From: Macrostomum lignano
Lineage: Eukaryota
Length of the DNA: 64,000 bases
NCBI GenBank assembly: GCA_002269645.1
Contig: NIVC01000800.1
Coordinates: forward strand, 62,001-126,000
Reading direction: 5' to 3'
Part shown: positions 9,801 through 55,189 of the stretch, one piece after another
How positions within the stretch are numbered: the stretch's first letter is position 1
How the letters are laid out: the number at the start of each line of letters is the position of its first letter
The notes under the pieces: generated by a model
The model's input: only the letters and a program-made list of their open reading frames with translations
The model's database searches: none
What the model was told of the DNA's origin: nothing
Made by a program: the position numbers and the translations under genes

Positions 9801-12625
9801 AACTATTTATATTAAAGTTGAAAACAAAAAATACAGCCTTTAGTCTATTTAGACTGTCATTTAATTTCATTTAATTGGTCAGGCCATTTATTTTCAAGTG
9901 ATACAGACGTGAGAGAACCTGATTGGCTGCAAGGAGAGAGGACACAATGTACAGTGGCTGAGAGTACAAATCAAGCGGAACCATGTCTAAACTGTAGATA
10001 ATAGTTTAATATAGCTTAAAACTATAGATTAATAGTCTAAATAATATTATAACACCCCTAAAAAAACTCGGCCAGAGATACGAGCCCTCAGCTGACTGCT
10101 GCGCGTTCGTAGCAACGTTTTTGAGGGGTGTTATCTTATACTTAAGGCACTGAAATGGGGGGGGTTAAGTATAGATAAGACAAAGAAGGGGTGGAGTGCG
10201 CGATGAAAGAAAGAGGCGACATCGAAGAGCCAATCAGAGGGCAGCAGGGGAGAGAGAGAAAATAATAAGACTGAAACTAGACGGAGAGAAAAAAGAGTAA
10301 ACAGAGACAAGTCAAGGTGAACTAAGGTGCTTTACAGTCCATGTGGCATTTATTTTGTACTTTTCAATTCGTGTGATTGTGTCTTCAAATCCAATTTCAT
10401 CTGTACTCAAGAGTCTACGTAAAATTTCATCTCACTGTGGTTCAAATGTACTTTAAAAACGCTAAAAAGGTGTTTAATTTTTTGCTGACTCATTCGCGCG
10501 CAGGTGACCACACTGGCCGTGACGGATCCCGATCTGCCGTCCAACTGGAACCACGTCTACTCTGTGCAGCGAAGCGTGTTCACCTCGGCCGACAGGTCAA
10601 AGGTCAACTCGCCAGCCGACGGCGCATTCCGCGTCGATTCAAGCGCCGGCGTCCTGCGCAGCGGCTTCCTAAACTACGCTTCATACATCGGCGGCACCTT
10701 CGACGTGGACGTGCTGGTCTCCGACAGCCGGTCGCGCACTGCCAGGGTCAACGTCCGGGTCAACATTCTGGGCGAGGAGAATCGACTTCGCTACGTGGTG
10801 TCCATGACCCCGGTGCAGGCCCTGGGCGTGGCTCAGCAGCTCATTGACAATGTCACCGCTATGGTGAGACGCACTTTAGTTTTGAAGATGCTTTAAATTG
10901 AGCTCCTTTATCTGACCATAAGAGTGTTTGACATTCTGGTAAAAGTTGACCTTGTTGAGATACTATTTGACAAATCGGTGAAACACTTCTCAGACGCATT
11001 TGCTGGTTTGGCTTGGCTGGTCAAAAGTGGGCGAATGACGCGAATAGTGATTCTCAAGTTCTGGTAGAATGGGACTTTGCTGTTGCGAGTACTGTGTGGG
11101 AATATAGTTATAGTAGAGCAGTGTTTCACACAGAATATACTCAGCAACATCGAAGTCACCATAACAGAAGATTCCGTCTGTGGACGCCGAGTTGCCGAGT
11201 ATACCGGTATATTCTGTGGTGTTTCAGAAGAATTTCACCGACAATTGGGCGGCATGCGACCAGTACTTCGACTTGGCATTTGACATTGTTTAGCAATTTG
11301 ACGATCATTATTCACATTTTTAATGCAGAACAATCCTTTACTACAAAAAATGCATTGTCTGTAAGATAGTCAAACAGAAAAACAATGCAAAGAATATCGA
11401 CGGCGCCCTCTGATTTTCCCATTAACGCCCTTAAAGCATGGGTATTACTAATTATTGTGCCATAGACATTTGTGTCCTTGACAAAGTGGGACAGAATAAT
11501 CGGGCGTTAAATGTCATTAACTGCCCGTTAGGGGTTAGGTCTCGCTGTCAGTTGATTCTTCTCGTCTGCTGGTTGAGTCGTCTTGTTCAGGGTCTCTACC
11601 TTGCAGACTTTTCAGGCGCGCTAACAGAGTTCTCTTGTTACCATTAGTTGGCTGGCCAGCCGCGGAGAGTTGGGCTTTCAATTCTCGGGCTGTAAGTTTA
11701 GCAAGGCTAGCCATCGCGCAAAAAAAATTGAGCAGGTGTGCGACACCGCGAGCAGAGCACAAGCTGGGGGTTAAAAGCTAGCCGCCCCGCGACAACCCCC
11801 CCCCCCCCCCCCAACGCAGACGCCACCCCGCCACCCCTAACACACTTTGTACGCGGCCTACGGCCGCCCACAAAGCACACCTAATTTCGATATTTCTTTC
11901 CTGCAAGCGGGCTGAAATGTAGTCTATGGCATTAAAAGGCAAGAATAAGTGCCCAGCGGGCACAAAGGTCATGGTAAAATCGCACTGGGACCGCTGATTA
12001 TTTATCCATTGTGGCTCAAAGGCTGCGATTGCTGGTCGAATCTTATGAATATTTAAGTTATAAGCTTTTTTAAGAAAGCTGAAAGGACTAAAAGGACGTC
12101 TCAAGCCCGGGGATTGAGTACGATTTTGCTGAGATCTACTGCGTGTAACCGAATGTACTTTGCTCTTAGCGGGTCTGTACAACTCCGGTGTGCAAGGCGC
12201 AATCATCTCCTCCATCTCCCGCCCTCCCAAAGGTTCGCTCCAGCGGCCTCACCCTGACATTCCAACGGGTATCTCTGCACGCCACCACAGCCTCGGGCGC
12301 CGAGCAGAACACAGCGGACGTGTGCTTCGCCGTGGCCGGCTCCGAGTCCCAGATCCTCACTCTGCGCCAGGCTAAGGCCACCCTTGATAAGGGCGTGAGT
12401 TCGAGTCTGGACTCGCTTTACTCTGAGTTCAAAGTGCAGAGCATCGGGTACTGCAACTCGTACAGCTTGTTCAAGACTTACAACTACCTGGGCATCGAAG
12501 GCTACTGGTGGCTGTTCACGGCGATGTCGGCCATCATCATCCCGTTCGCGTTAGGCCTTGTTGGCTTCATGATGGTCCTGTACAACAAGTATGAGACCAT
12601 GTGCACCGCTCTGCAGTATCAGTGA
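817..12625 (+). CDS. Multi-exon non-classical cadherin with ~14 EC repeats, membrane-adjacent domain and one TM helix; Cad87A/CDH23-like
   Basis: Signal peptide MKPLISVALLLVAAAG. GT-AG exons inferred at 817-1083, 1620-2842, 3275-4936, 5985-6210, 7706-8203, 8899-9161, 9335-9727, 10504-10863 and ~12170-12625. Repeated DxNDNxPxF, LDRE/LDYE and AxDxD motifs; the DAQDTPPVF linker is typical of the CDH23/Cad87A group. TM segment YWWLFTAMSAIIIPFALGLVGFMMVLY. Five 1-nt frameshifts (~3845, ~4612, ~6030, ~6165, ~8925) must be assumed. Confidence 0.88.
1130..1505. repeat. 19-bp minisatellite (CCTGACACCCTGCTAGCGT-like) in cadherin intron 1
   Basis: Tandem copies visible; these account for the repetitive ORFs 1122-1412 and 1202-1429. 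Confidence 0.9.
4990..5905. repeat. GA-rich 10-bp satellite (GAGAGAGTGG/GAGAGAGTGA)n in a cadherin intron
   Basis: Pure tandem array that produces the spurious LSHSL ORFs. Confidence 0.95.
7230..7520. repeat. 23-bp degenerate minisatellite (GTAGATTAGTGACGATTCTCAGG)n
   Basis: About 12 diverged tandem copies. Confidence 0.85.
11535..11880 (-). mobile_element. SAP-domain ORF fragment, probably the 5' end of a retroelement or other TE, in a cadherin intron
   Basis: MASLAKLTARELKAQLSAAGQPTNGNKRTLLARL fits the SAP helix-extended-helix consensus. It is antisense and intronic, truncated after ~60 aa, with a GC-rich leader. Confidence 0.5.
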
Positions 12626-16919: not shown

Positions 16920-19900
16920 TTAGTTCGGCGCCAGGTAGGAATCCATGCCAAGTTTAGACATCGTCGTGTTCGAGGACCTCGGCGGCGGCTGCGGCGGAGG
17001 CCCGGCCTGCTGCGAGCCAGCCGAGCTGTTTTTCCTAGAAAAGCTTCGCGAAATAGGCATCAGTTGCGTTTGCTCGGCCTGAGCTCGCCCGTAGGCTGAG
17101 TTGGCAAAGTTGCCGGTGGTTTGCTGGCTGACATCTAAGTTTGGTTCGTCTTCCACCTCCTCGTAGTAGGTGCTCTCAACTGGCTCGGTGCTGGGCTGCA
17201 TTAATTCCACGGGCTGCGGGCTGGCAAGCAAGTCGAATTGTTTCAGAGGAGAATAGTGCAACTGCAGCACCGCAAGCTGCCATTCCAATTATTATTTTAG
17301 GAGGCTTATGGGCACCCTGGCGCAAGAGCGTTGAGACACCTCTGCCCATTCCGTTGACTCCTGAGCACACACCAGCGCATGGACACTGTACGCAGTCACT
17401 CAATCACATACACGCTCACACAGCGTGTGCAGTGGTCTTGAATTTCTCATTGTCAGGGACAACACACTCTCTGTGCCTTGGGGGTTGGCCCTCGTGGATG
17501 TGAATCGAAACTTTAGGGTCGAGGTTATAGGCTTCATTTATAAAAGAATCGTCATGTCAACCATAAAATATTTATGGGGGATTGCTAAGATGTCAAGGTT
17601 CATGGGGGAGAATTGCTAAGATGTCAAGGCTCATGGTGGAATCGCTAAGATTTCAAAGCTCGTTGGGGGAATGGCTAAAGATGTCAAGGCTCATGGCGGT
17701 CAATCACTGAAACGCTTTGGCTCAAAGCATCTGTTGCTCAGATGCTTTAAGCCAAAGCTCATGGGGGATCTGATATCTTAGGCTATGATATGATAGGTGG
17801 CTTTCATGGCGGATGCTTTTTTGCTTCAAACATAATTTTTCTTAGGATATTAACAATAGCGACTTTTGAGTACAAGGTCGAAACGTACGAGTAATTTATT
17901 CAATAGCTTCTTTTTCTTTATTGTCTCCCAACGGGGGGGGGGCGCAGATGGCTAGTCCAATATACTAAACTCACGAGCTGGGCTGGTAGGCCACCCTGTT
18001 GACGCGCAGCTCCACTCTTGAAGAATGCTTCCGATGATAGACCATGATGCCAGCGACTATGGCGGTCAGGGAGCAGACAACGATCAACAGCACCGCCAGC
18101 AGCAGGATTGGCATCACGAGCTGTTAGTGAAAATCGGATAATTAAGTAGAAAAATTTGAGCGACGAATGAACGACAGACTGTCTGAACGACAGACTGTCT
18201 GAACGACAGACTGTCTGAACGACAGACAGTCTCGCTCTTCTTATGACATTATATAAAATACTTTATCCTCTACGATGTGCTTTTTCAAACTCTAAACTTA
18301 ATTCATTTGAGATTTAATGTTCAAATTTATCGCGGGAGGACTATAAAAGTTTCAACTTCAACAGGAAGTGAACTTCACTTTCTACCCCCACATGGCACTT
18401 TGGGCAGGTTCTGTTCTTGAAAGGGATCTTTTGATCTCGCAGTCCTCATTGTTTCGCAGGCTTCAGTTTATGGTTTGCTAATCAGTTCACAAAAACACCA
18501 AAATTTCACAAACCCGAAATTTAACAAAGTCGAAATATACTCTTAAATTTCAATGCTGTGAAATCTCGGGGTTGTGAAATTTCGGTATTATGCAATAGGT
18601 CGCGTGGATTTTTGAAAATATGAAATTTCAGGTTTGTAAAATTTTGGTGTTGTAAACTTCGGGTTTCTGAAAGCGCCCCGCAAATACATACAGACTTTCT
18701 TGGTTCAAGATACCACGCTAGACCTAAGGGCAGCAAGAACTTACTGTTTCATTCAATGGCTGCGGAGCGTCATGGCTTGCCGTGGTCAGCGCTCGAATTG
18801 CTGTTGGTGCCGGCGGCTGAAACTGGCACACAGCTCCTGAGAAGCCGCTCCTGCAGTCGCATCTGAAGCTGCCCACGGTGTTCACGCAGTCGCCATAGGA
18901 GCCGCAGAGACCTGCCACCAGGCGGCACTCGTCAACATCCTGGTCGCAGTGGTAGCCAGTGAATCCTTTGTCGCAGACGCACACCGATGAGCCGTTGCTG
19001 TTGAAAGTCTGGCAGCTGCCGTTGCGGCACCACGTGGCGTTGCGATGGCACGGGTGAGTCTCCAGCTGACAGTGAGGTCCGGTGAAGTTCATCGGGCACT
19101 GGCAAACCGGCCGTCCTTGCAGGTCCTCCGAGCAGCTGCCTCCGTTCTGGCAGAAGGCCTGTCCCTGCCGCAGACACTTGTGTGACGGAGCGCAGCTGCC
19201 GTTGAGAGCCGTGTAGCCGGTAGGGCAGATCGCAGAGCCGTTGGGGCTGCAGCCGAACCTGGACGGATCGCAGTGCACCGAACAGGCAGCTTGGTAGAAG
19301 TTCGGCCTGCACCCGATCCAGACAGCCAGTTTCAGGATGTGACCATTGCTAGAGATCTCCGTAAGGTGCGATGACCAGCGGCTGTTTGCTGAGTTGTTAG
19401 CAAAAAATGGGAGCTCTGCGGCGTTGTAGGAGCGGTGCAAGCTGCACATGAGCTCATGCTCTCCAGGGTCTTTGTCCTTGACAGTGACCGACACTTGGAC
19501 ATTGTCAGTGGGCTTCAGATCCGATCCGGTGAAGTGAAACTCCAGAGGGTTGATTAGCTGGCCGATGAAATCTCCGAAGTGAATCACTGTCGGGGCATTG
19601 TCGTAGTCAGACGAAACGAAGGTTGCCAGAATTTTCCTTGGCGTCGACACGGAGATGAGAAAGTACGGGTCGCAGTGGTCACTTCCAAAGAAGCTCCGGT
19701 CGCAGCTGCCTCGGTCTCTCTGTCGATACGAGTCGAATTTCACGTATACTGCTCCACTGATCGCTGAGGAATAACTCCTGACTACTCCTTGCAACTAAAA
19801 TAATTTTAATAAGGAAAATTATAGATGACATTTTTACAGTTTGCTGTTTTTGCTGCAATTTTTACAATTATTGCTCCTAAATTTATGCAAATTGAGCTAA

Positions 19901-20791: not shown

Positions 20792-22004
<1,213 letters not shown>

Positions 22005-22304: not shown

Positions 22305-25418
<3,114 letters not shown>

Positions 25419-25686: not shown

Positions 25687-26177
<491 letters not shown>

Positions 26178-26178
<1 letters not shown>

Positions 26179-28546: not shown

Positions 28547-28999
28547 ACTAGTTGATCAAGAACACTCCTTTGCTAGAATGCAGCGGCCAGCGCCCTCCCA
28601 GTGTTGGAGGTGGCAACCAGTGGACTGAGCTAGCAGTTAAAACAAAACAGCTTTACTCGCTAGAGATCAATGCTTTTATTTGCTGAGTTGGCAAGCTCGG
28701 CTGAGGGGGTGTGAGTCGTCGAAGAGCGTTTCGGGACGGTACGCACATTGAGCACAGGGACAATGGCTTCACTTCAGAATTTGAATCGATGCCTTAAGGC
28801 GGAGGTTCCGACCTGGACGGAGCAGGAGGTGGCGCCACCACTTGCTGCTCACAGCCCGGTTTACGAGCCTCAGTGCTACGCTGGGAAACACCTGCTCCAA
28901 CTCTGCTAGCCACCAGGCCATTGCCCACGAAGTCACCCCAGCGAACTCTCTCCACCCCCCGCATGCGTTCGCGAGTCGCCATTGGAAGCGGAAGACGCT

Positions 29000-29012
29000 A
29001 TACTGCTATAAC
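29000..29012 (+). promoter_or_regulatory. Candidate TATA box of repeat-exon gene copy 1
   Basis: TATACTGCTATAA lies ~150 bp upstream of the ATG. Homology with copy 2 starts here. Confidence 0.45.
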
Positions 29013-29161
29013 TATGCTGCCGCCCCAGTCCGCGAGCTTCTCCAACTTTCCAACACACGCCCAGTTCGGAAACAGCTATAGAAAATATTGTAGCAGTTCG
29101 AGTTTTGTTGTTAAACAATCAACAACTGCAGGCTACTGTTTTGATTTGCTCAAGCAAGAGT

Positions 29162-32100
29162 ATGCTGCTGAAGGGCAGAGCTACTGCGGTGAGCATCTTT
29201 TTGCTGCTCGTTTTGCTTCTGGTTGGAACTCGCTGCCAAGCCAGACCAGTGCGAGGACCAGGTGAGTAGCACCTGATGTAGCAAACAGAGTAACAAATAT
29301 TGTGCAAAACATCATAGCAACTACTTGATTGCTTTGCACTTGAAGGACTTCCTTTGAAACCCGCAACTTTACAGAGTCTGAAGAGCACGAGGAATTTTAT
29401 CCAGAAGAGGAAGAAGAGGAGTTTTTTCCCGGTAAAAAAGGAGGAAGTGTCGTTTCAGAAGAATGTGAGTGGTTTTTCGACAGTCCAATAAAAATGAAAA
29501 CGCGTTTAATAACTGCATTCACAACTGCGTAATGCTTGAATCGCTTCAGTGCTGAAAAAGCTCCTGGCCGGCCGAGATGAAGTGTCGCGGTCGTCAAAGG
29601 ACATCCAGAAAGGTAAATCTGTAAAAGAGATTTAGCACATTAAACTATTCAATTATTCTACAAGCTTGGAGCACCATTTTCGATCTGCAGGAAGGCGCAA
29701 ATCCGATGGCAAAAACCCGAAGGTTGTGCCGCCCGCGAGGAAAAAGCGTAAGCCACAAATTCTGCATTTTCACTGTGAAATTCTTAGTAAAATTTGCTTT
29801 GTCTTTCAGTAGAGCGCAAAGTTCACAGCCTACCAAGAATTCACCCAAGCCGGAAAGTGGGCGGAAGCAGGAAGTCTGCGCCACCGGTGAGGAAAGGTAG
29901 GTCAGGAACTTTACCTGCATAATTTGGTTTTGCTCTTCTTGCCGTAAGACACGTTGGCGGAAAGAGTTCCCTACCAAAGAGTGAGTTTCAGATAACATCA
30001 GATAGCAAGCAAACATCAATCCAAATTGGCGGTTTCAGAGAAGAACCAAAAGAATCGTAGAATCGTTTTGGGAGGCTCCGAGAGCTCCCTGCCGCCTCAG
30101 TTTAGAAGTGAGTATCAGCGCCATGACTCACAATGGCGACATTTCTGACACACTAGCATGCAATTCATCAAGAAGTTTGACTGTTTCAGAGAAGAACAAG
30201 AAGAGGATGATTGTAGGCGGCTCCGAGAGCTCCCTGCCGCCTCAGTTTAGAAGTGAGTATCAGCGCCATGACTCACAATGGCGACATTTCTGACACACTA
30301 GCATGCAATTCATCAAGAAGTTTGACTGTTTCAGAGAAGAACAAGAAGAGGATGATTGTAGGCGGCTCCGAGAGCTCCCTGCCGCCTCAGTTTAGAAGTG
30401 AGTATCAGCGCCATGACTCACAATGGCGACATTTCTGACACACTTTAGCATGAAATTGATCAAGAAGTTTGACTGTTTCAGAGAAGAACAAGAAGAGGAT
30501 GATTGTAGGCGGCTCCGAGAGCTCCCTGCCGCCTCAGTTTAGAAGTGAGTATCAGCGCCATGACTCACAATGGCGACATTTCTGACACACTAGCATGCAA
30601 TTCATCAAGAAGTTTGACTGTTTCAGAGAAGAACAAGAAGAGGATGATTGTAGGCGGCTCCGAGAGCTCCCTGCCGCCTCAGTTTAGAAGTGAGTATCAG
30701 CGCCATGACTCACAATGGCGACATTTCTGACACACTAGCATGCAATTCATCAAGAAGTTTGACTGTTTCAGAGAAGAACAAGAAGAGGATGATTGTAGGC
30801 GGCTCCGAGAGCTCCCTGCCGCCTCAGTTTAGAAGTGAGTATCAGCGCCATGACTCACAATGGCGACATTTCTGACACACTAGCATGCAATTCATCAAGA
30901 AGTTTGACTGTTTCAGAGAAGAACAAGAAGAGGATGATTGTAGGCGGCTCCGAGAGCTCCCTGCCGCCTCAGTTTAGAAGTGAGTATCAGCGCCATGACT
31001 CACAATGGCGACATTTCTGACACACTAGCATGCAATTCATCAAGAAGTTTGACTGTTTCAGAGAAGAACAAGAAGAGGATGATTGTAGGCGGCTCCGAGA
31101 GCTCCCTACCGCCTCAGTTCAGAAGTGAGTATCAGCGCCATGACTCACAATGGCGACATTTCTGACACACTAGCATGCAATTCATCAAGAAGTTTGACTG
31201 TTTCAGAGAAGAACAAGAAGAGGATGATTGTAGGCGGCTCCGAGAGCTCCCTGCCGCCTCAGTTTAGAAGTGAGTATCAGCGCCATGACTCACAATGGCG
31301 ACATTTCTGACACACTAGCATGAAATTGATCAAGAAGTTTGACTGTTTCAGAGAAGAACAAGAAGAGGATGATTGTAGGCGGCTCCGAGAGCTCCCTGCC
31401 GCCTCAATTCAGAAGTGAGTATCAGCGCCATGACTAACAATGGCGACATTTCTGACACACTTTAGCATGAAATTGATCAAGAAGTTTGACTGTTTCAGAG
31501 AAGAACAAGAAGAGGATGATTGTAGGCGGCTCTGAGAGCTCCCTGCCGCCTCAATTCAGAAGTGAGTATCAGCGCCATGACTCACAATGGCGACATTTCT
31601 GACACACTAGCATGCAATTCATCAAGAAGTTTGACTGTTTCAGAGAAGAACAAGAAGAGGATGATTGTAGGCGGCTCCGAGAGCTCCCTACCGCCTCAGT
31701 TCAGAAGTGAGTATCAGCGCCATGACTCACAATGGCGACATTTCTGACACACTTTAGCATGAAATTGATCAAGAAGTTTGACTGTTTCAGAGAAGAACAA
31801 GAAGAGGATGATTGTAGGCGGCTCCGAGAGCTTTCTACCGCCTCAGTTTAGAAGTGAGTATCAGCGCCATGACTCACAATGGCGACATTTCTGACACACT
31901 TTAGCATGCAATTGTTCAAGAAGTTTGACTGTTTCAGAGAAGAACAAGAAGAGGATGATTGTAGGCGGCTCCGAGAGCTCCCTGCCGCCTCAGTTCAGAA
32001 GTGAGTATCAGCGCCATGACTCACAATGGCGACATTTCTGACACACTTTAGCATGCAATTCATCAAGAAGTTTGACTGTTTCAGAGAAGAACAAGAAGAG

Positions 32101-35100
32101 GATGATTGTAGGCGGCTCCGAGAGCTCCCTGCCGCCTCAGTTTAGAAGTGAGTATCAGCGCCATGACTTCTAAGCGTTTAAGAGTTACGCACGTTTTTAG
32201 CACACTGGACAGGGATTAAGGTAGTAGGCAGTAGCCAGGTGAGTGCGAAAAAAACTGGGAATCGACAAAAAGGACGCCGTAATCCCAGATGATGTCGAAG
32301 AAAAAAGGCAATATAATTCGTGAAACAAAATATGAAGCAAGGAGCGCTGATAGAGATTCAGTCGTCGAAGCTTGAGGCAGAAGTTTTGCCTTGACCTTAC
32401 ATCTCGAGACTCTGTTGTGCTCCAAAAAGTTTTCTTTGGTTTCTTGAACGGTGCATGAAGCGATTGACTGGGTGAATTGCCATTTTCTGCAATTCATGCA
32501 GCAGTAAACCCTTAAGAGCGTTGAGGACATTTTTATTGATGATGGATCCGTGGTACGTGCGTTTATCTGCTTGAAAACTGGAAAAAGTGATGTATTTTAG
32601 CATCAGTCTCACTTTAAGCAGTCCAAAACAGTAGCCTAAGTTAGTGACTCAAGAAAGGACTCAAGATGGAACTCAGGACTCAAGGAAGGCAAGGCAAGAC
32701 TCTCTAAGACAATGTCGAGAACCCCTGGGAGTGGTGTTGTTCCACAAATTCAACCTGGATGAGATGTCTGGGGGCTTCTTGTCCACTCGTCCGATCAGTG
32801 ATTGATTGGCCTTCGGTCTGGTCCGGAGCTTCACTTCGGGCTCCTTTATGTCGATGAAGTTGACATCCTTTATGATACCATAGCTCGAGAGTCATTATGA
32901 ATCGATCAGCTGATCAATACTGCAGGTTCTGTGTCAGAAGAGGAGCGATCCAGCAAACGCTTCCCTTTGTCCGGATACGCAAAGGCCTCCAAGACTCCCG
33001 GGTCCAGAGGTGACAAGGACAAAGAGTTTAAAAGTGCGTCATAATTTGTCATACCCTGATAATTATTGTAGGACAGAATTTTCGTAGTTGAAAAAACTCT
33101 GAAGAAAAATTCGAAAAAATCGATAAGCGATTTGGAATCAAAGTGACGGGCACCGGGAGCTCCCGACCGCCCCAGAATGGAAGTGAGTTGCGGTGGTCAA
33201 TCTGTCAATCAAAGAAGACATTTCCAGTATCCTTAGGTCTTCAACTGCTCTGCCTCGTACTCCAGTTGATTTAAGATTCGAGTCGAACATTCGGCAGTTT
33301 AACCATTGTTAACTTTCCAAAACCATTGGAAAAGTCTGGCTTGGACGTTAGGAAACAGAAAGTTTTACTGTTTCTTTTAGCGACCCTCGAAAGGAAGGCA
33401 AGAATTTATACCGTGGACGACATAAATACCTGCATAAACGTGGGCCACAAACACCCAGGGTGCGCAGATGTCCTCAGACAGCGAAAAATGTGGTGGCCGC
33501 TTGCACAATCGAATTCAGGGTCCTTAGTCCAAGTCTCAGGTGCTTCGTCTCTTCTAAAACAACCCAAAAAATTAAAATGCATTCAACTTTTCCAAGTGCA
33601 CCCAGCTGACACTGAAACAAATGCAACTAAAACACTGCTACGCTTTAGAGAAGAACAAGAAGATCTCCAAGGCTCCTCAGGTGATCGTGGGCGGCTCTGA
33701 GAGCTCCCTGCCGCCTCAGTTTAGAAGTGAGATCCCTTTAATACTGCATCAGTTGTTATGATTTCAAAGCCAATCAAGAGCATCTGTGAACAAATATGAG
33801 TCCGTTCATTCACTGCAGAGAAGCACCGCAAAGCCAAGAAGTCAGTTCCGAAGCCAGGCTCCTCGAAGGCCTCACTACCTCCCAAGAAACCCAAGAAGAT
33901 TAAGAGTGAGTCTGTTTCTCCATTTTGCCGATTTTAAACCCTTGAATCAAGCAGTGTCTCCTGCGGTTGCAGAAATCGTCAGGCACCTTGGAATCAAAGC
34001 TGCTGAGCGCAAAAGTGAGTCTAAATTCTTCTAATTTTCTTTCGTTTTCCGAAATGATCTCATGTTAGCATGCACAGGCGACGCCCCTTGCGCGTATGCG
34101 CTTGCAGAGCAGTCGAGAGGGGCAGGCAGCAGCAGCCTGAGGGGTCAGCGCAAGCGCTTGCAAGTCAGCGACGAGGCAATCAGTCAGAGTGACCAAGCGG
34201 GTCTGGCCGCTCCACAGTCGCTCGGTCGGCTGGTGCAGCAGGGCCAGGGCCAGAAGGACGGCCTCACCGCGGCCAAGGGCCCGTAGGCAGTCGCCCAGCA
34301 GCATTTGACGATGCCGGCGCAGGGTAGCGCTCACCAGCGCGGGCCATCAGAGCGTTGGTCGACATGCGCTCCAGATAGTGCACTCCAAGCGCGTAACGCA
34401 GCAGCGATCGGTAGAGCGCGTCCAGGGCTCGCGCTCGCATCTGCGTCAGCGGCACAGCCTCCATGCCGTACAGAAGGATCGGCTCTACGACCGCGTGGAA
34501 CAGGCACACCTTCAGGTCGTCTCTGGCAGCTGAAGTGAAGACGTTCATGAAGAAGGGAGCGCGCGTCGCGCCAGGCCTGGTTCCTCCTGTCGGAGACAAT
34601 GGCACCGGGTTTATCACCAGGGTGTCGAGGTACCGGAAGTCCTCGCACGTCGCGGTGCCGTCTCCTTTGGACAGCGTGAGATTTGGGGCGGTATTTGGGC
34701 CCTCGTGCAGCGCCTCCGTCTTGCGAGAATTCACCAGCAGCCCAAGACGGGCGCCCTCGTCGCCGAGTCTTGTGATAGTGCGCTGGGCAGCGGCTGGGTC
34801 GCGACAGAGCAGCGCGATTTCGTCAGCATATGCGAGAGCGGGAAGCAAAAGGAATCGAAGCAAAACGAGAGGGCGTCTGGACCTTCGGTGTAGAATCAGT
34901 AGCTGTCATCCTCGTGGAAGGACTGATGCAGCGCATAAGTCCAAAACTACGAGGAAGCGCAGCAGAACCAGCATGTCGCCCTGAAGGACGCCTGGGCTGA
35001 TGCCGAACTCTTCTTCTGGACCGCCGCCGCTTGACATGACAAAGGCACTGGAGTCAGGATAGAGATCTATCACTGCGTACGCGTAGCAGGTACGCCATAA

Positions 35101-38100
35101 TGAGATAGGAGCCACGCGATAGCTCTGTGGTGGATCCGCCCGGGCAGAAGCCACTTTGGAGGCTCAGCAGCAGTGGGTCGAGGCCGGGTTGGATGCCGTT
35201 GCGCAGAATTGCGTTCAGCAGCTATCTCGGCTGGTGGAGGCGCCTTTCTTTGAGATGGAGACAATATTGGAGGTCCGACATTGCTGAGGAGCTAAGGCGG
35301 CCTCGTTGCCTCCAAGGCTGCAGTGCTTGTTCAGCAGGCTGGTGATGATCGGGGTGAGCTCAGGCAGCTTCAGGACCCTGGGAGGGATGGCGTCCACCCC
35401 AGCGGCGGCATCAGCTCGCATGGTCATCAGTGCTCGGCCAACCTCGCCTGCAGTGGTGGGGCCGGTGTCGAAGGCGCCTGATTGGACTGAAGCGAAGTCT
35501 GGGATCGGCAGGAGAGGCACAGTTGAAGCGGGCGCGTTGAGCACCTCGCGGTAGTGGGTGGCCAGCCGGGCCTTCCGGTGCTCGGTGGAATCAGCACCGA
35601 CGATGGTGTCGGGCTTCGGCTTCCTGCCGGTCAGCTGGTTGATGGCCCTTCTGGAAGCGCTATGGCGGCCGTTGTCAGTGGCGAGTTGGGTTTTGCTCAC
35701 TGCCACTTCGATGAAGACTTCAGTCCGCTGGGCATAGATGCGCTGCAGCTCGTCCGTGGCAGCACTGGCCTGGGCGCTGTCATGGCCGTGGAGGGCAGCA
35801 GTGCTCTCCTTCCCTTGGAGACGATGAGACTGCGGTCCCACAGAGCCTTTGGATGGTTTTCCTGTCTCCGTGGGAGAAGCGCTGCAGCATCCTCGACGGC
35901 GTGATGGAAAGACTCGAAAGACTCGTTCAAAGAAATTTGGAAGCTTTCTGAGGCGCTTTCGCATGGTGCCATTGACAGCCATCAGATCTCTGGCCTAGAA
36001 AAAACTAGATAGGAAAGGTGAGTTGGCATTGGGGATGCCACAGCTGTTCTTCACCAGGCGGCCGTCGGCTGGAAATTGCGAGTTGAAATCCCCTGCACCA
36101 AACTGTCGCCGATGTTCTTGAACTGCCAGGATGGAGACGTTGAGGTCAGCGGCCAGCCTTGTCAGCTCCTGCAGTCTCCATGTCTGACTGAGAGCGCGGG
36201 CATTGAAGGTGGCGACCCGAAGCTGGTCTTGAAGATGCGGCCGACTTGTGCCCTTGTTGGCTCTGCTTGTCACTGATCTCAGCAATGTACAGTGTTGCAT
36301 TTGACTGAAAACACCAATAATTGTACTCCTTGAGGATAACAAGAAGATCTCCAAGGCTCCTCAGGTGGGCGGCTCCGTGAGCTCCCTGGCGCCTCAGTTT
36401 AGAAGTATAAGATCTGTTTAATACTGCATCAGTTGTTGTGATTTCCAAGCCAATCAAGAGCATCTGTAAACAAATATGAGTCCGGTCATTCACTGCAGAG
36501 AAGAAGCGCAAAGTCAAGAAGGCAGTTCCGAAGCCAGACTCCTCGAAGGCCTCACTACCTCCCAAGAAACCCAAGAAGATTAAGAGTGAGTCTGTTTCTC
36601 CATTTTGCCGATTTTAAACCCTTGAATCAAGCAGTGTCTCCTGTGGTTGCAGAAGTCGTCAGGCACCTTGGAATCAAAGCTGCTGGGCAAAGTGAGTTTA
36701 GAGTATTCTAACTACATGTACCTTCGCTGTCACCTTCGATCTCGTAGTAATATTTCTACTTTGTAACAGAGAAGGAATATTGATTAAGGTGTTTGACTGT
36801 TTCAGAGAATAACAAGAAGATCGCCAAGGCTCCTCAGGTGATCGTGGGCGGCTCCGAGAGCTCCCTGGCGCCTCAGTTCAGAAGTGAGATCCCTTTATAA
36901 TATTATATCAATTTTTTATTTCAAAGCCAATCAAGAGCATCTGGGAACAAATACGAGTATGAGTCCGGTCATTCACTGCAGAGAAGAACCGCAAAGCCAA
37001 GAAGTCAGTTCCGAAGCCAGGCTCCTCGAATGCCTCACTACCTCCCAGGAAACCCAAGAAGAATAAAAGTGAGTCTGTTTTCTGTTTTCGTTGGTGTCGA
37101 CGAGAAGCGACGAGACACCCTATGCAGGTCCTTTCCAGGGTCCTTCCCTATGCAGGGCGCCCGACATGAGCCTCGAGTGAAGAGGGGGCCTTCTTATAAT
37201 AAAGTGGCGCCCCTGATGAAAGATTCTGGCTGTGCGCCTTGGCACAAGTCTGACTGCTTCATCATGTTTATTGCCCCTCGATGCATTTTGACCCAAAGGA
37301 GATGTAGCTAGATACTTGAAGTATTAAGAAAAGTTCCAGTGCTGTGTTGATACAAAAGGGAATAATAGTAAATACTTGAGCTAGCTCAATGTAATTTGGC
37401 TATAACTTCTTCATGAAATTACAGAGCAACAAATACTGCTTTCATTTTTGCTGCCTCAACGAACACGGTGCTTTAAGTTGACAAAAACTCTCTCTTTTAT
37501 ACCCACAATCCTCTGGGATTCCAAGGGAGTGACCTTGGATGGGATTCTCTATGTTTGCATCGGTGTCACGTTAAAAGTTCAGAGAACCGCGCCGACTAAG
37601 CTCGGGAGTCGGCCGTCCAAGTGACTTTCGGCCTTCTTAATCCCACTAGTGAAAATCGTCACTTTTATCGGTTTTTTTATTTTTCAGAAAAGCAAAAGAA
37701 GAGGAAAATTTTATTCAGACACGTTCGCACCGGTGGCGATGAAAGCTTGACTTCAACTGGCTCTGGAAGTGAGTGCATGCCATCTATGCTCGTATCCTCC
37801 CACATGCGATCACTCTTTTTCGAAAATTTTATTTTTACGAATCGTTCGGTTTTTTAGCACCTCAAAAAGTAAATATTGGGAAGAAGAAAAGAATTCAAAA
37901 ACGCAAGGCCGGCGGAAGTGGCGTCAAAAAGACCGGCGGAAGTGGCGTCAAAAAGACCGGCGGAAGTGGTGTAAAAAAGGCCGGCGGAAGTGGCGTCAAG
38001 AAGGCCGGCGGAAGTGGCGTCAAGAAGGCCGGCGGAAGTGGCGTCAAAAAGGCCGGCGGAAGTGGCGTCAAAAAGACCGGCGGAAGTGGCGTCAAAAAGA

Positions 38101-38624
38101 CCGACGGAAGTGGCGTCAAGAAGGCCGGCGGAAGTGGCGTCAAAAAGGTTGGTGGAAGTGGCGTCAAAAAGGCCGGCGGAAGTGGCGTCAAAAAGGCCGG
38201 CGGAAGTGGCGTCAAAAAGACCGGCGGAAGTGGCGTCAAAACAGTTGGCGGAAGTGGCGTCAAAAAGGCCGGCGGAAGTGGCGTCAAAACAGTTGGCGGA
38301 AGTGGCGTCAAAAAGGCCGGCGGAAGTGGCGTCAAAACAGTTGGCGGAAGTGGCGTCAAAAAGGCCGGCGGAAGTGGCGTCAAAAAGGCCGGCGGAAGTG
38401 GCGTCAAAAAGGCCGGCGGAAGTGGCGTCAAAAAGGCCGGTGGAAGTGGCGTCAAAAAGGCCGGCGGAAGTGCCGTCAAAAAGGCCGGCGGAAGTGCCGT
38501 AAAAAATTCCAGTGGAAGTGGCGTCAAAAAGGCCGGCGGAAGTGGCGTCAAAAAGGCCGCCGGAAGTGGCGTTAAAACGGCCCCTCTGAAGGGACCCAGC
38601 AAGGGAAAGGCAAACCAGCCTTAA
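29162..38624 (+). CDS. Secreted multi-exon Lys-rich repeat precursor, copy 1: signal peptide, acidic pro-region, xGGS peptide modules, (KKAGGSGV)n tail
   Basis: Exons: 29162-29261 (MLLKGRATAVSIFLLLVLLLVGTRCQARPVRGP), 29375-29464 (acidic), 29550-29612, 29691-29747, 29810-29896, ~29949-29980, 30039-30107, 14 x 63 nt (30190...32147), ~33088-33182, 33649-33726, 33819-33905, 33955-34014, 36499-36585, 36635-36691, 36806-36883, 36982-37068, 37688-37768 and 37858-38624. All internal exons are phase 1/1 with GT-AG; two need a 1-nt correction. Confidence 0.78.
30108..32165 (+). repeat. 145/147-bp tandem intron-exon array (14 exons of 63 nt) within gene copy 1
   Basis: Unit: TTTGACTGTTTCAG | AGAAGAAC...TTTAGAA | GTGAGT. 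The exon reads (K)KNKKRMIVGGSESSLPPQFR. Confidence 0.93.
32170..33045 (-). mobile_element. Possible decayed DNA-transposon-derived insertion in an intron
   Basis: Unique sequence interrupts the exon series. Weak inverted ends (TTACGCACGTTTT / AAAAGTGCGTCA) and broken minus-strand ORF fragments; no family assigned. Confidence 0.25.
34050..36290 (-). mobile_element. Decayed APE-RT non-LTR retrotransposon (RTE-like) with internal deletions, in an intron
   Basis: APE start LRVATFNARAL...ILAVQEHR and AGDFNS. RT motifs GVLQGD, YADEIALL, LVNSRKTE, FRYL and ILLYGME are spread over several frames. Confidence 0.8.
37905..38575 (+). repeat. 24-bp coding repeat (AAAAAGGCCGGCGGAAGTGGCGTC)n encoding (KKAGGSGV)n in the last coding exon of copy 1
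   Basis: About 28 copies. The frame is fixed by the acceptor at 37857 and by the C-terminus LKGPSKGK..QP*, which is shared with copy 2. Confidence 0.88.
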
Positions 38625-38625
38625 G

Positions 38626-38718
38626 GTAGGTAGGCCGAAGGCATTACTTCCAAGGGTGTTGAACGCATTGTAAGCTGAGCAATGGCAAGCTGATCCAATT
38701 CCTAATCTTCTCTTTCAG
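38626..38718 (+). other. 3'-UTR intron starting 1 nt after the stop codon (copy 1)
   Basis: CCTTAAG|GTAGGT...CTAATCTTCTCTTTCAG|GTGCCGAC; the same arrangement occurs in copy 2 (59578-59760). Confidence 0.65.
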
Positions 38719-39043
38719 GTGCCGACTGTCGAAGTCAGAATTGCATTCTGCGAGGCTGATGATCCGAAACATGACCAGACAAAATATATTATTTTTTCTC
38801 GGTCCGGTCAAAGTGAACAAACATTTCCTTTCTCCCCGACAATTCACATCTAGTCGCTTCTATTTTGAAAGTGCTGTCATCCTAACTACCATAACGATGT
38901 TGAGCTGAAGAAAATAAAAGCCAGGATTTAATAATGAATTGTTTTGATTCCTAAACAGGCTGTGGTTATTCAAGCAAGTTTCAAAGAACCTAAATGAATT
39001 ATTTGCGTTATTTCAACTCTGGAAAATAACTCTGAACGATGAA

Positions 39044-41512: not shown

Positions 41513-42748
41513 TAGACAACACAATAAATCGGAAATATGGTATGTATCTCCCACTATATGGCTAAAGAACGTAAAACTACAATTAAAAAAGTTCTTCAGT
41601 ATTTTTAAACTTAAATCAAGTCAAAGCTGTAGTCTATGGCTAAGCATTTAAACAAGGTACAGGCTGAAACCACATAATGACTAAGAAAATAAAATAAGTA
41701 AGAGCAAGCGAAGAAGCGAATAATTATAAATATATAGATTTTCACGACATGACTAGCGAACGGTTTGAAAGTCTGACGGACGTTGAAGTAGACGCCTTGA
41801 TTCAAAGTACTCTTCCGCCAAACACAATAAGAAAGTGTGAGTGGATGATCGCTACATTTCGTGAATGGCATCAGTTCAAGAAGAACCAGTGGGCTACATC
41901 AGGCGGACCATCTTTAGTGGTATTAAAGGAGATCGAGGAATTCACTAAGAACGATTTTAACTACTTGTTGAAGATGTTTATTCTAGAGGTGAGAACGAAA
42001 TGGAATGAAAGATATTAGGCCGGCACATTAACCGGCAGAAGACGGATGGCACGATTTCGTGCCATAAAGTAATCATAGTTATTGACGGAACCGAATCTTA
42101 GTGTCTAGGGCAATCGTAGATTGCAGAATTTAATACCCCCGTTGCCGACTGACATGGCTAAAAAACGTGCCACGTCCGTTTTAGTTGGAAAGCTGCTTAT
42201 TTTCCTATAGGTTAGGTGGCACTGTCTATGGCAATCATCACAGATCAAGAATAGGACCAGGACCAAATGCACACCTGCGTATATTAAAAACGAATATTAG
42301 TATTTGAAGTAGTTAGTACATTTGTATCTTATGCGTAGTATAGTATAACACGAACGTAGATCATGCTTTCTGTATTGATAACACAAACTAACGCAAAAAG
42401 CATTAGTTTTTATGAAGTCTTTAGGAAGGCTCCACGTCGCCTAGCATCACCGGTATCCTCAACCAATATTTTAATAGCCTGTCTCAAGAACTGCAGAAAA
42501 GTCTTGCTGCCACCTGCCTGTTGGTAGACAATCAAAGCGTTGCGAACGAGCAGCAGGATCAGGTGAAACCCGAGTTTGTGGAACCACCGGATGCTTTTTC
42601 GATTGGCCAAGTACGGGTGTAGAGCGGAATCCATGTGGTCGACGCCACCCATGCTGTTACTTACTTACTTACTACTGACGGGGGGCGCAGGCGCCGCGAA
42701 TAGGCCGCGAGGCCCCTATCGCAACCCCAAGGTAAAAGAGCACAAGGA

Positions 42749-47613
<4,865 letters not shown>

Positions 47614-49016
47614 TTACCGTCTTATCCCAGGATTGCTCCCAGGCGAGGCTCCGGCAGGCCCCCGGTCCACACTCTGCAAGATCAGGGGGCGGGAGGCCGG
47701 CTGTGGGCTTGGGACACAGGCGCCAGGTCGAGTTGACAGCCGACGCCCGAGCTCTCCCCCACAAGAGCGGCCCTCGAGAACCCGTGTGGTACCAGTTGCA
47801 ACTAAGGGCTGTCGATGGGTAGTTGGCGCTTAGCCAGCAGCCAACTACTTAGCAGCCACCTGCCCCGCAAAAAAGCAGCAGGGGGGATCCGTCCCCCACC
47901 AGCAGACCAAGACGAGGAAGCTAGCCGCTTCCACGCCAGGCCAGAACGAAAAGGAGGGGGAAGAGCCTCCTCGAAAAACGAAAAGCTGGCGGATGTCACA
48001 GAGTCCCTCGGTTTAAGTTGCCGTTTGCCCCCCACCCATGCTGTTAGAGTACGCTAGTCGGTTTGGTGACGATCTGAACGCCGCCGCCACGACGAGTGCG
48101 CTGAACTTGCCTACATTCGGCCGATCCAGCGGTGTCCAATACGAAAACAGTCTTGACGCCACTCTGTTTCCTGTCAACAAACTTGCAGGCAAGCACATTT
48201 CCAGAGCGTGCAATGGCAGAAGAAGTTGGCTGCAGATTTACAGCCTGCAGCAGGTTTGGGATGCCGCGGTTTTTGCGCACTGTGCCAGTGAGAAGAACAT
48301 TCCGTTGCAGCAGCCACGTAGCAAGTCTGTGCGAAGTGAACCAACTGTCTGTGAAAATATGGTAGCCTAGGTAAAGCAAATTGCGGCACAACTCAGCCAC
48401 AACTCTCTCACTCATGGACAAATTTTGACAGCCCAGTCCATCACCGAACAATTGGTTGGCTTCAGTTGATGTATGGATTTCAAAATTCCACAGGTAGGTC
48501 ATGTCGGACTCACAAAGGCAGTACATCTTGATTCCGTACTTACTGCTCTTCGTTGGGATGTACTGCTTGAACAACAGTCTTCCCTTGTACAGCACGAGAC
48601 TTTCGTCAATCGAGAGCCGCTGACGAGGCATAGTTGTTGCTGCACAGCTGCTTAGCCTGTTGCAGAAAAGGCTGCGTCTTAGCCAAGGGACCCCCGTGCA
48701 GAGCCTCAGTGCAATCGTAAAAGCGAAAACAGGACAAGATCTGCTTGAACCTGTCTCTAGGAAGAGAACAAGGCTCAGCAAGAAATGCACAGTGATAAGC
48801 CGGATCTTGCGACCAATAGCTCGATATTTCAGGCTTCTTGTCCAGTCCCATCAGCAAAACAATTCCGATCAATTTTCTTACTTCATTAACCGTGCAGTCC
48901 TTCCAGTTCAGCACAAAATTTGGGACTGCTCCACCGTCAAAGTTATCCTCATAGGTCTTCCAAACCTTTGCGTTTGTCCAGTTCTTGATGTTCTCCATCA
49001 ACCCGTCCGTCAAATA

Positions 49017-49118
49017 CGAGGGCTGAGCAATAAGTTTCCGGATGTGCATAGTTGAGAGGCGGCTGACAAAATCTGACAAAATCAGATTCTGAAATCTGAA
49101 ACTATTGCTCAGCCCTCG
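49017..49118. mobile_element. 102-bp Tc1/mariner-type MITE inserted in the piggyBac transposase gene
   Basis: TA on both flanks; TIR CGAGGGCTGAGCAATA(A)GTTTC. Removing it restores FIKLYLTDGLMENI. Confidence 0.88.
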
Positions 49119-52860: not shown

Positions 52861-52939
52861 AATTACTGGAGAACATTCAGCAGTCTGCAACGCCCCCACA
52901 TATCTCGACTGCTTCTTCCGATGTGATGTAATCTGATGT

Positions 52940-55082
52940 GACTGGCTTTGAATCTAATGAGACTGACTATCAATCTAATGAGACTGGCTATCAATCTAAT
53001 GAGACTGGCTATCAATCTAATGAGACTGGCTATCAATCTAATGAGACTGAGACTGGCTATCAATCTAATGAGACTGGCTATCAATCTAATGAGACTGAGA
53101 CTGGCTATCAATCTAATGAGACTGGCTATCAATCTAATGAGACTGGCTATCAATCTAATGAGACTGGCTATCAATCTAATGAGACTGGCTATCAATCTAA
53201 TGAGACTGGCTATCAATCTAATGAGACTGGCTATCAATCTAATGAGACTGGCTATCAATCTAATGAGACTGGCTATCAATCTAATGAGACTGGCTACCAA
53301 TCTAATGAGACTGGCTATCAATCTAATGAGACTGGCTATCAATCTAATGAGACTGGCTATCAATCTAATGAGACTGGCTATCAATCTAATGAGACTGGCT
53401 ATCAATCTAATGAGACTGGCTATCAATCTAATGAGACTGGCTATCAATCTAATGAGACTGGCTATCAATCTAATGAGACTGGCTATCAATCTAATGAGAC
53501 TGGCTATCAATCTAATGAGACTGGCTATCAATCTAATGAGACTGGCTATCAATCTAATGAGACTGGCTATCAATCTAATGAGACTGGCTATCAATCTAAT
53601 GAGACTGGCTATCAATCTAATGAGACTGGCTATCAATCTAATGAGACTGGCTATCAAACTAATGTAATGAGACTGGCTATCAATCTTATCTAATGAAACT
53701 GGCTATCAAACTAATGTAATGAGACTGGCTATCAATCTTATCTCATGAGACTGGCTATCAATCTAATGAGACTGGCTATCAATCTAATGAGACTGGCTAT
53801 CAATCTAATGAGACTGGCTATCAATCTAATGAGACTGGCTATCAATCTAATGAGACTGGCTATCAATCTAATGAGACTGGCTATCAATCTAATGAGACTG
53901 GCTATCAATCTAATGAGACTGGCTATCAATCTAATGAGACTGGCTATCAATCTAATGAGACTGGCTATCAAACTAATGTAATGAGACTGGCTATCAATCT
54001 TATCTAATGAAACTGGCTATCAAACTAATGTAATGAGACTGGCTATCAATCTTATCTAATGAAACTGGCTATCAAACTAATGTAATGAGACTGGCTATCA
54101 ATCTTATCTCATGAGACTGGCTATCAATCTAATGAGACTGGCTATCAATCTAATGAGACTGGCTATCAATCTAATGAGACTGGCTATCAATCTAATGAGA
54201 CTGGCTATCAATCTAATGAGACTGGCTATGAATCTAATGAGACTGGCTATCAATCTAATGAGACTGGCTATCAATCTAATGAGACTGGCTATCAATCTAA
54301 TGAGACTGACTATCAATCTAATGAGACTGGCTATCAATCTAATGAGACTGGCTATCAATCTAATGAGACTGACTATCAATCTAATGAGACTGGCTATCAA
54401 TCTAATGAGACTGGCTATCAATCTAATGAGACTAGCTATCAATCCTATCTAATGAGACTGGCTATCAATCTTATCTAATGAGACTGGCTATCAATCTTAT
54501 CTAATAAGACTGGCTATCAATCTTATCTAATGAGACTGGCTATCAATCTAATGAGACTGGCTATCAATCTAATGAGACTGGCTATCAATCTTATCTAATG
54601 AGACTGGCTATCAATCTTATCTAATAAGACTGGCTATCAATCTTATCTAATGAGACTGGCTATCAATCTAATGAGACTGGCTATCAATCTAATGAGACTG
54701 GCTATCAATCTTATCTAATGAGACTGGCTATCAATCTTATCTAATGAGACTGGCTATCAATCTTATGTAATGAGACTGGCTATCAATCTAATGAGACTGG
54801 CTATCAATCTAATGAGACTGGCTATCAATCTAATGAGACTGAGACTGGCTATCAATCTAATGAGACTGGCTATCAATCTAATGAGACTGGCTATCAATCT
54901 AATGAGACTGGCTATCAATCTAATGAGACTGGCTATCAATCTAATGAGACTGGCTATCAATCTAATGAGACTGGCTATCAATCTAATGAGACTGGCTATC
55001 AATCTAATGAGACTGGCTATCAATCTAATGAGACTGGCTATCAATCTAATGAGACTGGCTATCAATCTAATGAGACTGGCTA
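52940..55082. repeat. 21-bp minisatellite (GAGACTGGCTATCAATCTAAT)n
   Basis: About 100 copies, with occasional 26/27-bp variants; source of the SNETGYQ/LIASLIR ORFs. Confidence 0.97.
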
Positions 55083-55189
55083 TTCGAATAATTATCGAGC
55101 GCAACTCGTCTGGCCCTGCCAGTTGGTGGGCACGCATGTCGTAGTGCACAGTGGGCAGCACAGGGATTGGCTCCAGGGTCAGGTCCACT

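Follow-up and report, generated by a model that had tools for sequence, protein, structure and literature searches.

When every unit of a tandem repeat carries a splice acceptor and a splice donor, are we looking at a satellite or at the exons of a gene? The question is raised by a 64,000-nucleotide stretch of the genome of the flatworm Macrostomum lignano (assembly GCA_002269645.1, contig NIVC01000800.1, positions 62,001 to 126,000 of the forward strand; hereafter the window, in which all positions are counted from its first letter), which contains two arrays with periods of 145 and 147 bp. A first-pass annotation had read the first array as a run of exons, with one module per exon, coding for a secreted product. 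Our analysis leads to the same view: the apparent 145/147-bp satellite is almost certainly the repeated exon-plus-intron unit of two neighbouring genes, here named gene A (29162-38624) and gene B (55349-59576). Intact open reading frames (ORFs), synonymous variation among the copies and matching splice junctions in UniProt gene models all back this reading, and the products may be polyproteins from which many copies of a peptide are released.

Tandem Repeats Finder places the 145-bp array at 30074-32168 (14.4 copies, 97% matches) and the 147-bp array at 55980-59434 (23.7 copies, 98% matches), the two periods differing because of a 2-nt indel (TT) in the intron. A regular-expression scan combined with reading of the sequence identified 14 array exons in gene A and 23 in gene B, each unit running as ...GTTTGACTGTTTCAG before the exon and GTGAGTAT after it. 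The TTTCAG acceptor and the GTGAGT donor are uniform in both arrays, the introns are 81-84 nt long and lie in phase 1, and exon length is 63 nt in 36 of the 37 array exons (60 nt in the remaining one, 57214-57273). The unit is thus as first described, namely a strong acceptor, a 63-nt exon and a GTGAGT donor. When the array exons are concatenated and translated in six frames, a single sense frame is open, which reads KNKKRMIVGGSESSLPPQFRK with its last codon split 1/2 over the junction; one antisense frame is also stop-free, but it comes without splice signals or a start in that orientation. The product of one array exon is KNKKRMIVGGSESSLPPQFR(K), a module of 21 residues composed of a polybasic linker (R-KKNKKR) and a conserved motif, MIVGGSESSLPPQF. 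In all 14 + 23 array copies KR directly precedes the motif and R-KK follows it, and the single usable open frame agrees with the earlier description of the spliced array as KKNKKR-motif-R repeats. In the gene model, the exon-exon junction of the array reads ...CAGTTTAGAA|AGAAGAACAAG..., and as every junction is in phase 1, any copy number stays in frame. Separately, a candidate hairpin in the intron (CGCCAT...ATGGCG) was dropped, its fold being no better than that of shuffled sequences (z = -0.46).

Only seven sites are variable among the 36 full-length array exons: six carry synonymous third-position changes and one a Ser-to-Phe replacement, seen in one copy only. Given that 21% of sites are synonymous, the probability that at least six of seven changes are synonymous is ~5e-4. 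The sole exon indel spans 3 nt, exactly one codon, and intron indels span 1-2 nt. Since intron variation is about equal to exon variation and includes these 1-2-nt indels, it is homogenisation that keeps the nucleotide identity of the units, and selection that keeps the peptide. Old diverged copies also retain the motif, as [IV]VGGSESSL[PA]PQFR. In paralogous Lys-rich modules, synonymous versus non-synonymous changes number 0 versus 5, 1 versus 4 and 1 versus 7, non-synonymous change being at least as frequent as synonymous change (pN >= pS). As the motif is kept and the Lys-rich modules change by replacement, the constraint acts on the motif itself and goes beyond composition, and the pattern of substitutions among copies shows the motif to be under purifying selection at the amino-acid level.

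The two arrays do not appear to evolve separately. Between genes A and B, whole array units (exon plus intron) show 97-100% identity, and intron haplotypes are shared; the flanks of the two genes are only 67-80% identical. Such a pattern indicates concerted evolution of the arrays across ~26 kb, the arrays probably growing and shrinking as a phase-1-preserving cassette is exchanged unequally.

When exons of matching phase are joined, starting at the ATG (29162) and ending at the TAA (38622-38624), gene A gives an uninterrupted ORF of 959 aa in ~31 coding exons, with all introns in phase 1. The predicted product is thus up to 959 aa long, the use of some exons being uncertain. The span 29162-38624 given by the first-pass annotation is exact, as these positions are the ATG and the stop of gene A, and the signal peptide and acidic segment that it had read in upstream phase-matched exons are both found (MLLKGRATAVSIFLLLVLLLVGTRCQA|RPV, then SEEHEEFYPEEEEEEFF). 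The product consists, in order, of the signal peptide, an acidic exon, linker exons, a diverged module, 14 array modules, a mixed region and a (KKAGGSGV) tail; motif modules amount to 17 (the diverged one, the 14 of the array and two in the mixed region). All features described below for genes A and B are on the + strand unless otherwise stated. Gene A is preceded by an upstream block and 5' untranslated region (UTR) at 28998-29161, with a TATA-like TATACTGCTATAAC; from there onward it shows ~80% identity to gene B from 55188-55348 onward. Exon 1 (29162-29261) contains the start codon and the signal peptide MLLKGRATAVSIFLLLVLLLVGTRCQA|RPV and is 90% identical to exon 1 of gene B at the nucleotide level. 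Exons 2-5, between 29375 and 29896, are all phase 1-1 and encode the same residues as UniProt model P0128 (one of several predicted M. lignano models considered here): the acidic exon with SEEHEEFYPEEEEEEFF (29375-29464), then 29550-29612, 29691-29747 and 29810-29896. The linker exons look like decayed modules. A further decayed module, HVGGKSSLPK (29949-29980), is skipped: it was ruled out as an exon for lack of an in-frame acceptor, and it is missing from models P0121, P0127, P0128 and P0129. Exon 6 (30039-30107) carries the first, diverged module, KNQKNRRIVLGGSESSLPPQFRK, which is left out in model P0127, and is followed by the array itself (30190-32147), made of 14 exons of 63 nt, each encoding KNKKRMIVGGSESSLPPQFR(K), with phase-1 introns of 82/84 nt between them.

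Downstream of the array, the Lys-rich modules and the stop that had been announced are present (stop at 38622-38624). The region 32926-33182 holds an exon at 32926-33033 (SVSEEERSSKRF...) and a candidate exon at 33105-33182, which has weak acceptors only and whose use is uncertain. A first block of modules (33649-34014) comprises exons 33649-33726 (KNKKISKAPQVIVGGSESSLPPQFR), 33819-33905 (Lys-rich, KHRKAKKSVPKPGSSKASLPPKKPKKIK) and 33973-34014, and is found in models P0124, P0125 and P0132. A second, duplicate block (36335-36691) comprises a pseudo-exon with a broken frame and a GTATAA donor (36335-36404) and exons 36499-36585 and 36653-36691. Between these duplicated blocks, a degenerate retroelement fragment with a GC content of ~60% occupies ~34040-36310 in a gene A intron on the - strand (weak RVT_1 match of ORF 34264-34863); pieces of it are read as coding exons in models P0125 and P0132. 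Block 2 exons 36499-36691, duplicated around this fragment, may be unused, and model P0124 omits them. A third block (36806-36883 and 36982-37068) and exon 37688-37768 complete the stretch 36806-37768. The two motif modules of the mixed region read KKI[SA]KAPQVIVGGSESSL[PA]PQFR. The last coding exon (37858-38624) contains a 24-bp repeat at 37905-38582, translated as (KKAGGSGV) ~28 times, and ends with the TAA at 38622-38624. It is followed by a 3'UTR intron (38626-38718), a 3'UTR exon starting at 38719 and an AATAAA signal (38913-38918); this 38626-38918 region is ~77% identical to gene B 59729-60071.

Gene B provides a second instance of the same architecture. Although the first-pass annotation had mentioned the 147-bp units, it did not describe this second paralogue (55349-59576), which has 27 coding exons and encodes 634 aa with 23 modules and a truncated one. 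Its layout comprises a near-identical signal peptide, a longer acidic exon, one linker exon, the 23 modules and a Lys-rich-tailed last exon. The upstream block and exons 1-3 lie at 55188-55849, with the signal peptide at 55349-55448, the acidic exon at 55579-55701 and the third exon at 55796-55849. The array (56039-59312) has 23 exons, 22 of them of 63 nt, separated by phase-1 introns of 81-84 nt; the 60-nt exon (57214-57273) corresponds to the in-frame loss of one Lys codon. In the last coding exon (59395-59576), a truncated module runs on in frame into a Lys-rich tail (KNKKRMIVGGSE|RNESNKKKK...KHQP*), the tail being 81% identical to gene A 37881-37955. A 3'UTR intron (59578-59760), a 3'UTR exon starting at 59761 and an AATAAA signal (59956-59961) follow, within 59578-59961. 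Both genes share the C-terminal LKGPSKGK..QP*, and in both the 3'UTR intron opens 1 nt past the stop codon (TAAG|GTAGGT). Gene B is a short form of gene A. Its array begins within an intron (55980), and the array end (59437) falls within an exon that continues in frame into the terminal one; these positions suggest an in-frame deletion or an array transfer relative to gene A. No module copies beyond those of genes A and B were detected when the modules were compared with the window using tblastn.

Existing gene models offer a comparison with these two spliced sequences. A profile built from the two N-termini (198 aa) retrieved only Macrostomum lignano entries from UniProt. One of them, A0A1I8JLP8 (P0128, a predicted model), is identical to the spliced gene A model at 175 of 175 residues over six introns. 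The identical stretch takes in the first ...PPQFRK|KNKKRMIVGG junction and omits the pseudo-exon that had already been excluded beforehand. This junction, which the first-pass annotation had set as the test of its proposal, is thus reproduced exactly in the UniProt models, which are themselves predictions. The first 32 residues of P0128 are the translation of the 96 nt preceding the gene A ATG, that is, of the 5'UTR, and such non-ATG starts in translated 5'UTR suggest that the UniProt models were built on transcript evidence. All N-terminal models end inside the array, and the 3' exons of gene A are covered by models P0124 and P0132. The latter two use a GAA|GTGCCG donor inside the 24-bp repeat, joined to the acceptor at 38719 (span 38469-38719), which gives the alternative C-terminus ...GGS|ADCRSQNCILRG (...GGSADCRSQNCILRG). 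UniProt fragments of the family are named 'KI67 protein', 'H15 domain-containing', 'BLVR domain-containing', 'SET binding protein 1', 'Bindin' and 'Secreted protein'; the first five of these names mirror composition, not homology. It had also been proposed that repeat masking would hide the gene. The published GenBank annotation of M. lignano, which left out transcripts overlapping repeat annotations (PMC5730564), fits this view, but the gene is not fully hidden, as truncated, misnamed pieces of it are present in UniProt.

Several known gene types resemble genes A and B in their exon organisation. The internal exons of the two genes are multiples of 3 in length, phase 1-1, and range from 39 to 123 nt (mostly 63 nt). 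Short symmetrical exons that are tandemly duplicated with their introns, so as to encode a repetitive protein, are known from the 54-bp exons of fibrillar collagens and the PEVK exons of titin. In these genes the exon repeats have drifted apart, heterogeneous introns lie between them and the encoded proteins serve as structural fibres or springs; we know of no collagen- or titin-type exon-per-repeat gene with 97-100% identical units shared between paralogues. The micro-exon genes (MEGs) of schistosomes are also flatworm genes for secreted proteins, with a signal-peptide exon followed by small symmetrical exons that hold the bulk of the coding sequence (PMC4350168, PMC10526429). MEGs further undergo exon skipping that keeps the frame (M. 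lignano model P0127 similarly omits one module exon) and lineage-specific tandem duplication. Their exons are, however, dissimilar and 3-81 bp long, with introns of up to 5 kb, whereas genes A and B contain near-identical 63-mers with introns of 81-84 bp. Protein searches revealed no similarity to MEG families or to any non-Macrostomum animal protein.

Both proteins very probably enter the secretory pathway. The signal peptide (MLLKGRATAVSIFLLLVLLLVGTRCQA|RPV) has a canonical anatomy, with K and R in its n-region, a hydrophobic core of ~14 residues (Kyte-Doolittle mean up to 3.4) and C-Q-A at positions -3 to -1, and one UniProt fragment bears the name 'Secreted protein'. The mature gene A product has 932 aa, an isoelectric point (pI) of 11.5 and a net charge of +211; K+R make up 27.9% of its residues, and it contains neither Cys nor Trp (0/0) and 2 Tyr. 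The mature gene B product has 607 aa, a pI of 11.2 and a net charge of +113, with 26.9% K+R, no Cys or Trp (0/0) and no Tyr. Gly, Ser and Pro together represent 32-35% of the mature proteins, and the main residues of mature gene A are K (21%), G (15%), S (13%) and R (7%).

Database searches retrieved very little beyond M. lignano. A phmmer search with P0121 against 1.84 billion representative proteins matched only M. lignano entries (two representatives) and one protein of Symbiodinium natans, and protein and profile searches revealed no homologue outside M. lignano. No known neuropeptide or peptide family was homologous in the protein searches, no Pfam family scored above threshold in a scan of both proteins, and no Rfam family was found in the window. 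A condensed gene A query of 605 aa gave no protein matches, and it also missed the UniProt fragments of 136-305 aa that the 198-aa N-terminal profile had found. The Symbiodinium protein (CAE7229251) carries tandem M[VS]IGGD[ED]SSLPPEYRHG repeats in its C-terminal 80 residues, which are 48% identical to the flatworm motif MIVGGSESSLPPQFR over 37 aa (E 4e-6, a score inflated by the short repeated match). This likeness is probably convergent or due to chance. The same Symbiodinium protein has a hydrophobic, possibly membrane-spanning segment. As for the literature, no sequence, primer or annotation in the text and supplement of the prostate-transcript screen of Weber 2018 could be matched to the locus, nothing in the text of the adhesion papers of Wunderer 2019 and Bertemes 2022 could be matched to it, and the M. 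lignano neuropeptide literature contains nothing on the motif. The first-pass annotation had recognised no described family here, and indeed the family appears undescribed except for the misnamed fragments; its architecture is nevertheless not without precedent, as hookworm ancylotensin genes are similarly built.

What, then, would these proteins do? Our leading reading, to which we lean slightly and with less than even confidence, is that the two tandem paralogues encode secreted polyproteins cleaved into many peptide copies. Cleavage of the furin or prohormone-convertase type would occur after KR and within the basic run and, following carboxypeptidase trimming, would release a non-amidated peptide of ~14 residues, MIVGGSESSLPPQF, in 17 copies from gene A and 23 from gene B; this peptide might act as a signal within the worm or outside it. 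The calculated monoisotopic mass of this peptide is 1447.70 Da (1603.80 Da with the additional R), and those of the alternative candidates IVLGGSESSLPPQF and ISKAPQVIVGGSESSLPPQF are 1429.75 Da and 2040.09 Da, respectively. We lean to convertase cleavage because of the motif-specific constraint, the KR and R-KK flanks of every array copy, the simple layout of gene B, which resembles that of a precursor, and the precedent in hookworms. As proposed here for genes A and B, ancylotensin genes code for secreted precursors in which each exon supplies one of many peptide copies. There too, concerted evolution keeps the exons near-identical within a species and R or KR borders each repeat, and all ancylotensin introns are in phase 1 (~57 or ~82 bp). 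When synthesised, the ancylotensin peptides act as activators of NTSR1, the neurotensin receptor of the host (Koch et al., bioRxiv 2026, 10.64898/2026.01.24.701534). The two systems nonetheless differ in several respects: ancylotensin genes belong to nematodes instead of flatworms and show no sequence similarity to ours; they have 10-16 exons, versus 27-31 in the M. lignano genes; the long polybasic linkers (RKKNKKR) are a feature of the M. lignano genes, and gene A adds Lys-rich modules and the (KKAGGSGV)n tail; finally, M. lignano is free-living.

Several observations speak against the release of peptides or temper the case for it. Two diverged modules lack KR before the motif and have KK...QV instead (KKISKAPQVIVGG...). 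About 40% of gene A consists of Lys-rich modules and the (KKAGGSGV)n tail, which do not resemble peptide cargo, the extreme basicity of both proteins (pI 11.2-11.5, net charge +113 and +211) is unlike that of typical prohormones, and a Gly that would allow amidation is missing. Adhesive proteins of flatworms that contain KR-rich regions reportedly work without such cleavage (PMC6410801). In addition, the seven variable sites are few and, owing to concerted evolution, are not fully independent events. Lastly, the UniProt models are strong but not conclusive evidence of transcription, as they are predictions.

The same features fit a second reading that is nearly as likely as peptide release, although it too falls short of an even chance: the proteins would be secreted intact, as a polycation or a multivalent protein. 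They could form a polycationic disordered material with a cohesive or adhesive function, condense mucus, or be a component of rhabdites or seminal fluid; attachment to polyanions or surfaces would depend on the Lys-rich linkers and tails, and the array would merely set length and charge. The composition given above (no Cys or Trp, almost no Tyr, 27-28% K+R, the same extreme pI and net charge) agrees with such a role, as do the Lys-rich modules and the ~28-repeat (KKAGGSGV) tail of gene A, which hold no obvious peptide cargo. Evolution of the Lys-rich modules at pN >= pS is also what is expected if composition alone matters; this does not extend to the motif of 14-15 residues, whose individual residues are conserved (six synonymous changes versus one non-synonymous in the arrays, and retention in old copies) beyond the needs of a bulk material. 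Flatworms do secrete cohesive proteins of low complexity that are rich in K, R and G, such as Mlig-ap1 with its KR regions and the GRK-repeat proteins Mile-ap3 and Tmed-ap3 (PMC6410801, PMC9229212). Like the predicted products of genes A and B, these adhesive proteins are secreted, repetitive, of low complexity, extremely basic and difficult to assemble from short reads, and Mlig-ap1 comes from the same species. They are, however, 3,700-5,400 aa long and either consist mainly of G, R, K, H and S or are equipped with vWD, EGF and lectin domains, whereas the products of genes A and B have 634-959 aa, are similar in composition but poor in R, and carry a specific, non-basic conserved motif of 14-15 residues; no similarity to Mlig-ap1- or ap3-type proteins was detected in database searches.

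A third reading, which we consider improbable, takes the module as a motif resembling calpastatin subdomain B, which would make the protein or its peptides polyvalent, either inhibiting calpain-type cysteine proteases or serving them as decoy substrates. The motif would be convergent, the proteins would have 17-23 inhibitory heads, and the polybasic linkers might aid uptake by cells. The best-scoring Pfam match of both proteins is indeed PF00748 (Calpain_inhib), albeit below threshold (E 0.012-0.02). At profile positions 95-121 one module by itself reaches 15.2 bits, and the human calpastatin B27 peptide reaches 15.6 bits at the overlapping positions 102-117; ten shuffled controls gave zero matches. 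The spacing of IVGGSESSLPPQFR fits the consensus KLGERDDTIPPEYR, with its hot spots Leu-Gly and Thr-Ile-Pro (PMC4057710), the shared pattern being hydrophobic-G-x-x-[DE]-x-[ST]-[IL]-P-P-x-[YF]-R. The unrelated Symbiodinium natans protein with the tandem motif also matches PF00748 below threshold, with 17.3 bits at positions 104-117. The flatworm matches (15.2-16.6 bits), like those of B27 and the Symbiodinium protein, nevertheless all stay under the 22 bits of the Pfam gathering cut-off, no match is obtained with one diverged module that has the same core, and sequence and profile searches of the PDB retrieve no calpastatin chains. Calpastatin is likewise multi-headed, with a motif in tandem, but the T, I and Y of its subdomain B are replaced by S, L and F in the flatworm motif, and subdomains A and C are absent, the module having 21 residues and the Pfam match being confined to positions 83-121. 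Moreover, calpastatin is cytosolic whereas genes A and B encode a signal peptide, trimming would strip the Arg of the YR pair from the peptide, and the motif is short enough to arise by chance. To our knowledge, calpastatin is known from vertebrates only. If true, this reading would define a new class of secreted protease regulator, and the M[VS]IGGD[ED]SSLPPEYR repeats of Symbiodinium would suggest that a short linear motif, directed at the core of calpain proteases, turns up repeatedly among eukaryotes.

Finally, the notion of the arrays as non-coding satellite DNA, or as dead pseudogenes, with a fortuitous exon structure, which might be entertained given that simple and tandem repeats make up ~15% of the M. 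lignano genome (PMC5730564) and that many other arrays lie in the same window, is hardly tenable in the face of perfect splice signals and one usable open frame in all 37 units, near-exclusively synonymous variation with a sole, in-frame exon indel, two independent full-length ORFs with signal peptides and conserved tails, and UniProt gene models that agree with the spliced sequence.

The locus is a concrete case in which repeat masking and short-read transcript assembly hide a real gene under selection, and with ~15% of the M. lignano genome made of simple or tandem repeats, other exon arrays may be hidden likewise. It also illustrates how an exon-plus-intron cassette in phase 1 leaves copy number free while keeping the frame, in two paralogues whose arrays are homogenised together. 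Candidate roles for arrays with one peptide per exon include hormone, pheromone, seminal signal, adhesive and inhibitor. As a free-living flatworm open to RNA interference, in situ hybridisation and transgenesis, M. lignano would be an easy system in which to test the purpose of such arrays.

Other features of the window surround the two genes. Between genes A and B lies a retrotransposon at 42700-47600 (- strand), with an intact reverse-transcriptase ORF of 661 aa (RVT_1, E 1e-30) adjoined by further ORFs on the same strand, one of them with a weak RNase H match. A frameshifted piggyBac-type transposase (DDE_Tnp_1_7) at 48044-49079 (- strand) occupies the same intergenic space. A 21-bp satellite (AATCTAATGAGACTGGCTATC, ~97 copies) at 52930-55083 stops ~100 bp upstream of the conserved promoter block of gene B. 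The same satellite (AATCTAATGAGACTGGCTATC) recurs at 63920-64000, at the end of the window, beside a coding exon of SDHA, the succinate dehydrogenase flavoprotein subunit, whose C-terminal part is encoded at 63000-63900 (- strand). The SDHA fragment 63345-63869 matches fragments from many phyla with 57-70% identity (65-70% for the best), full-length SDHAs lying outside the matches listed. Upstream of gene A are a large multi-exon cadherin gene (Pfam Cadherin) at 1575-12600 (+ strand) and a gene for an EGF-repeat protein at 18724-19794 (- strand), which we would guess from its sequence to be of the Notch-ligand type. Simple arrays are also present on this side: a 10-mer repeated 92 times (4993-5918), (GACA)x303 (20792-22004), a 19-mer repeated 75 times (23655-25080) and (ATCT)x123 (25687-26178). 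None of these arrays between 4993 and 26178 has a tblastn match to the modules of genes A and B, and their abundance fits the ~15% of simple and tandem repeats reported for M. lignano.

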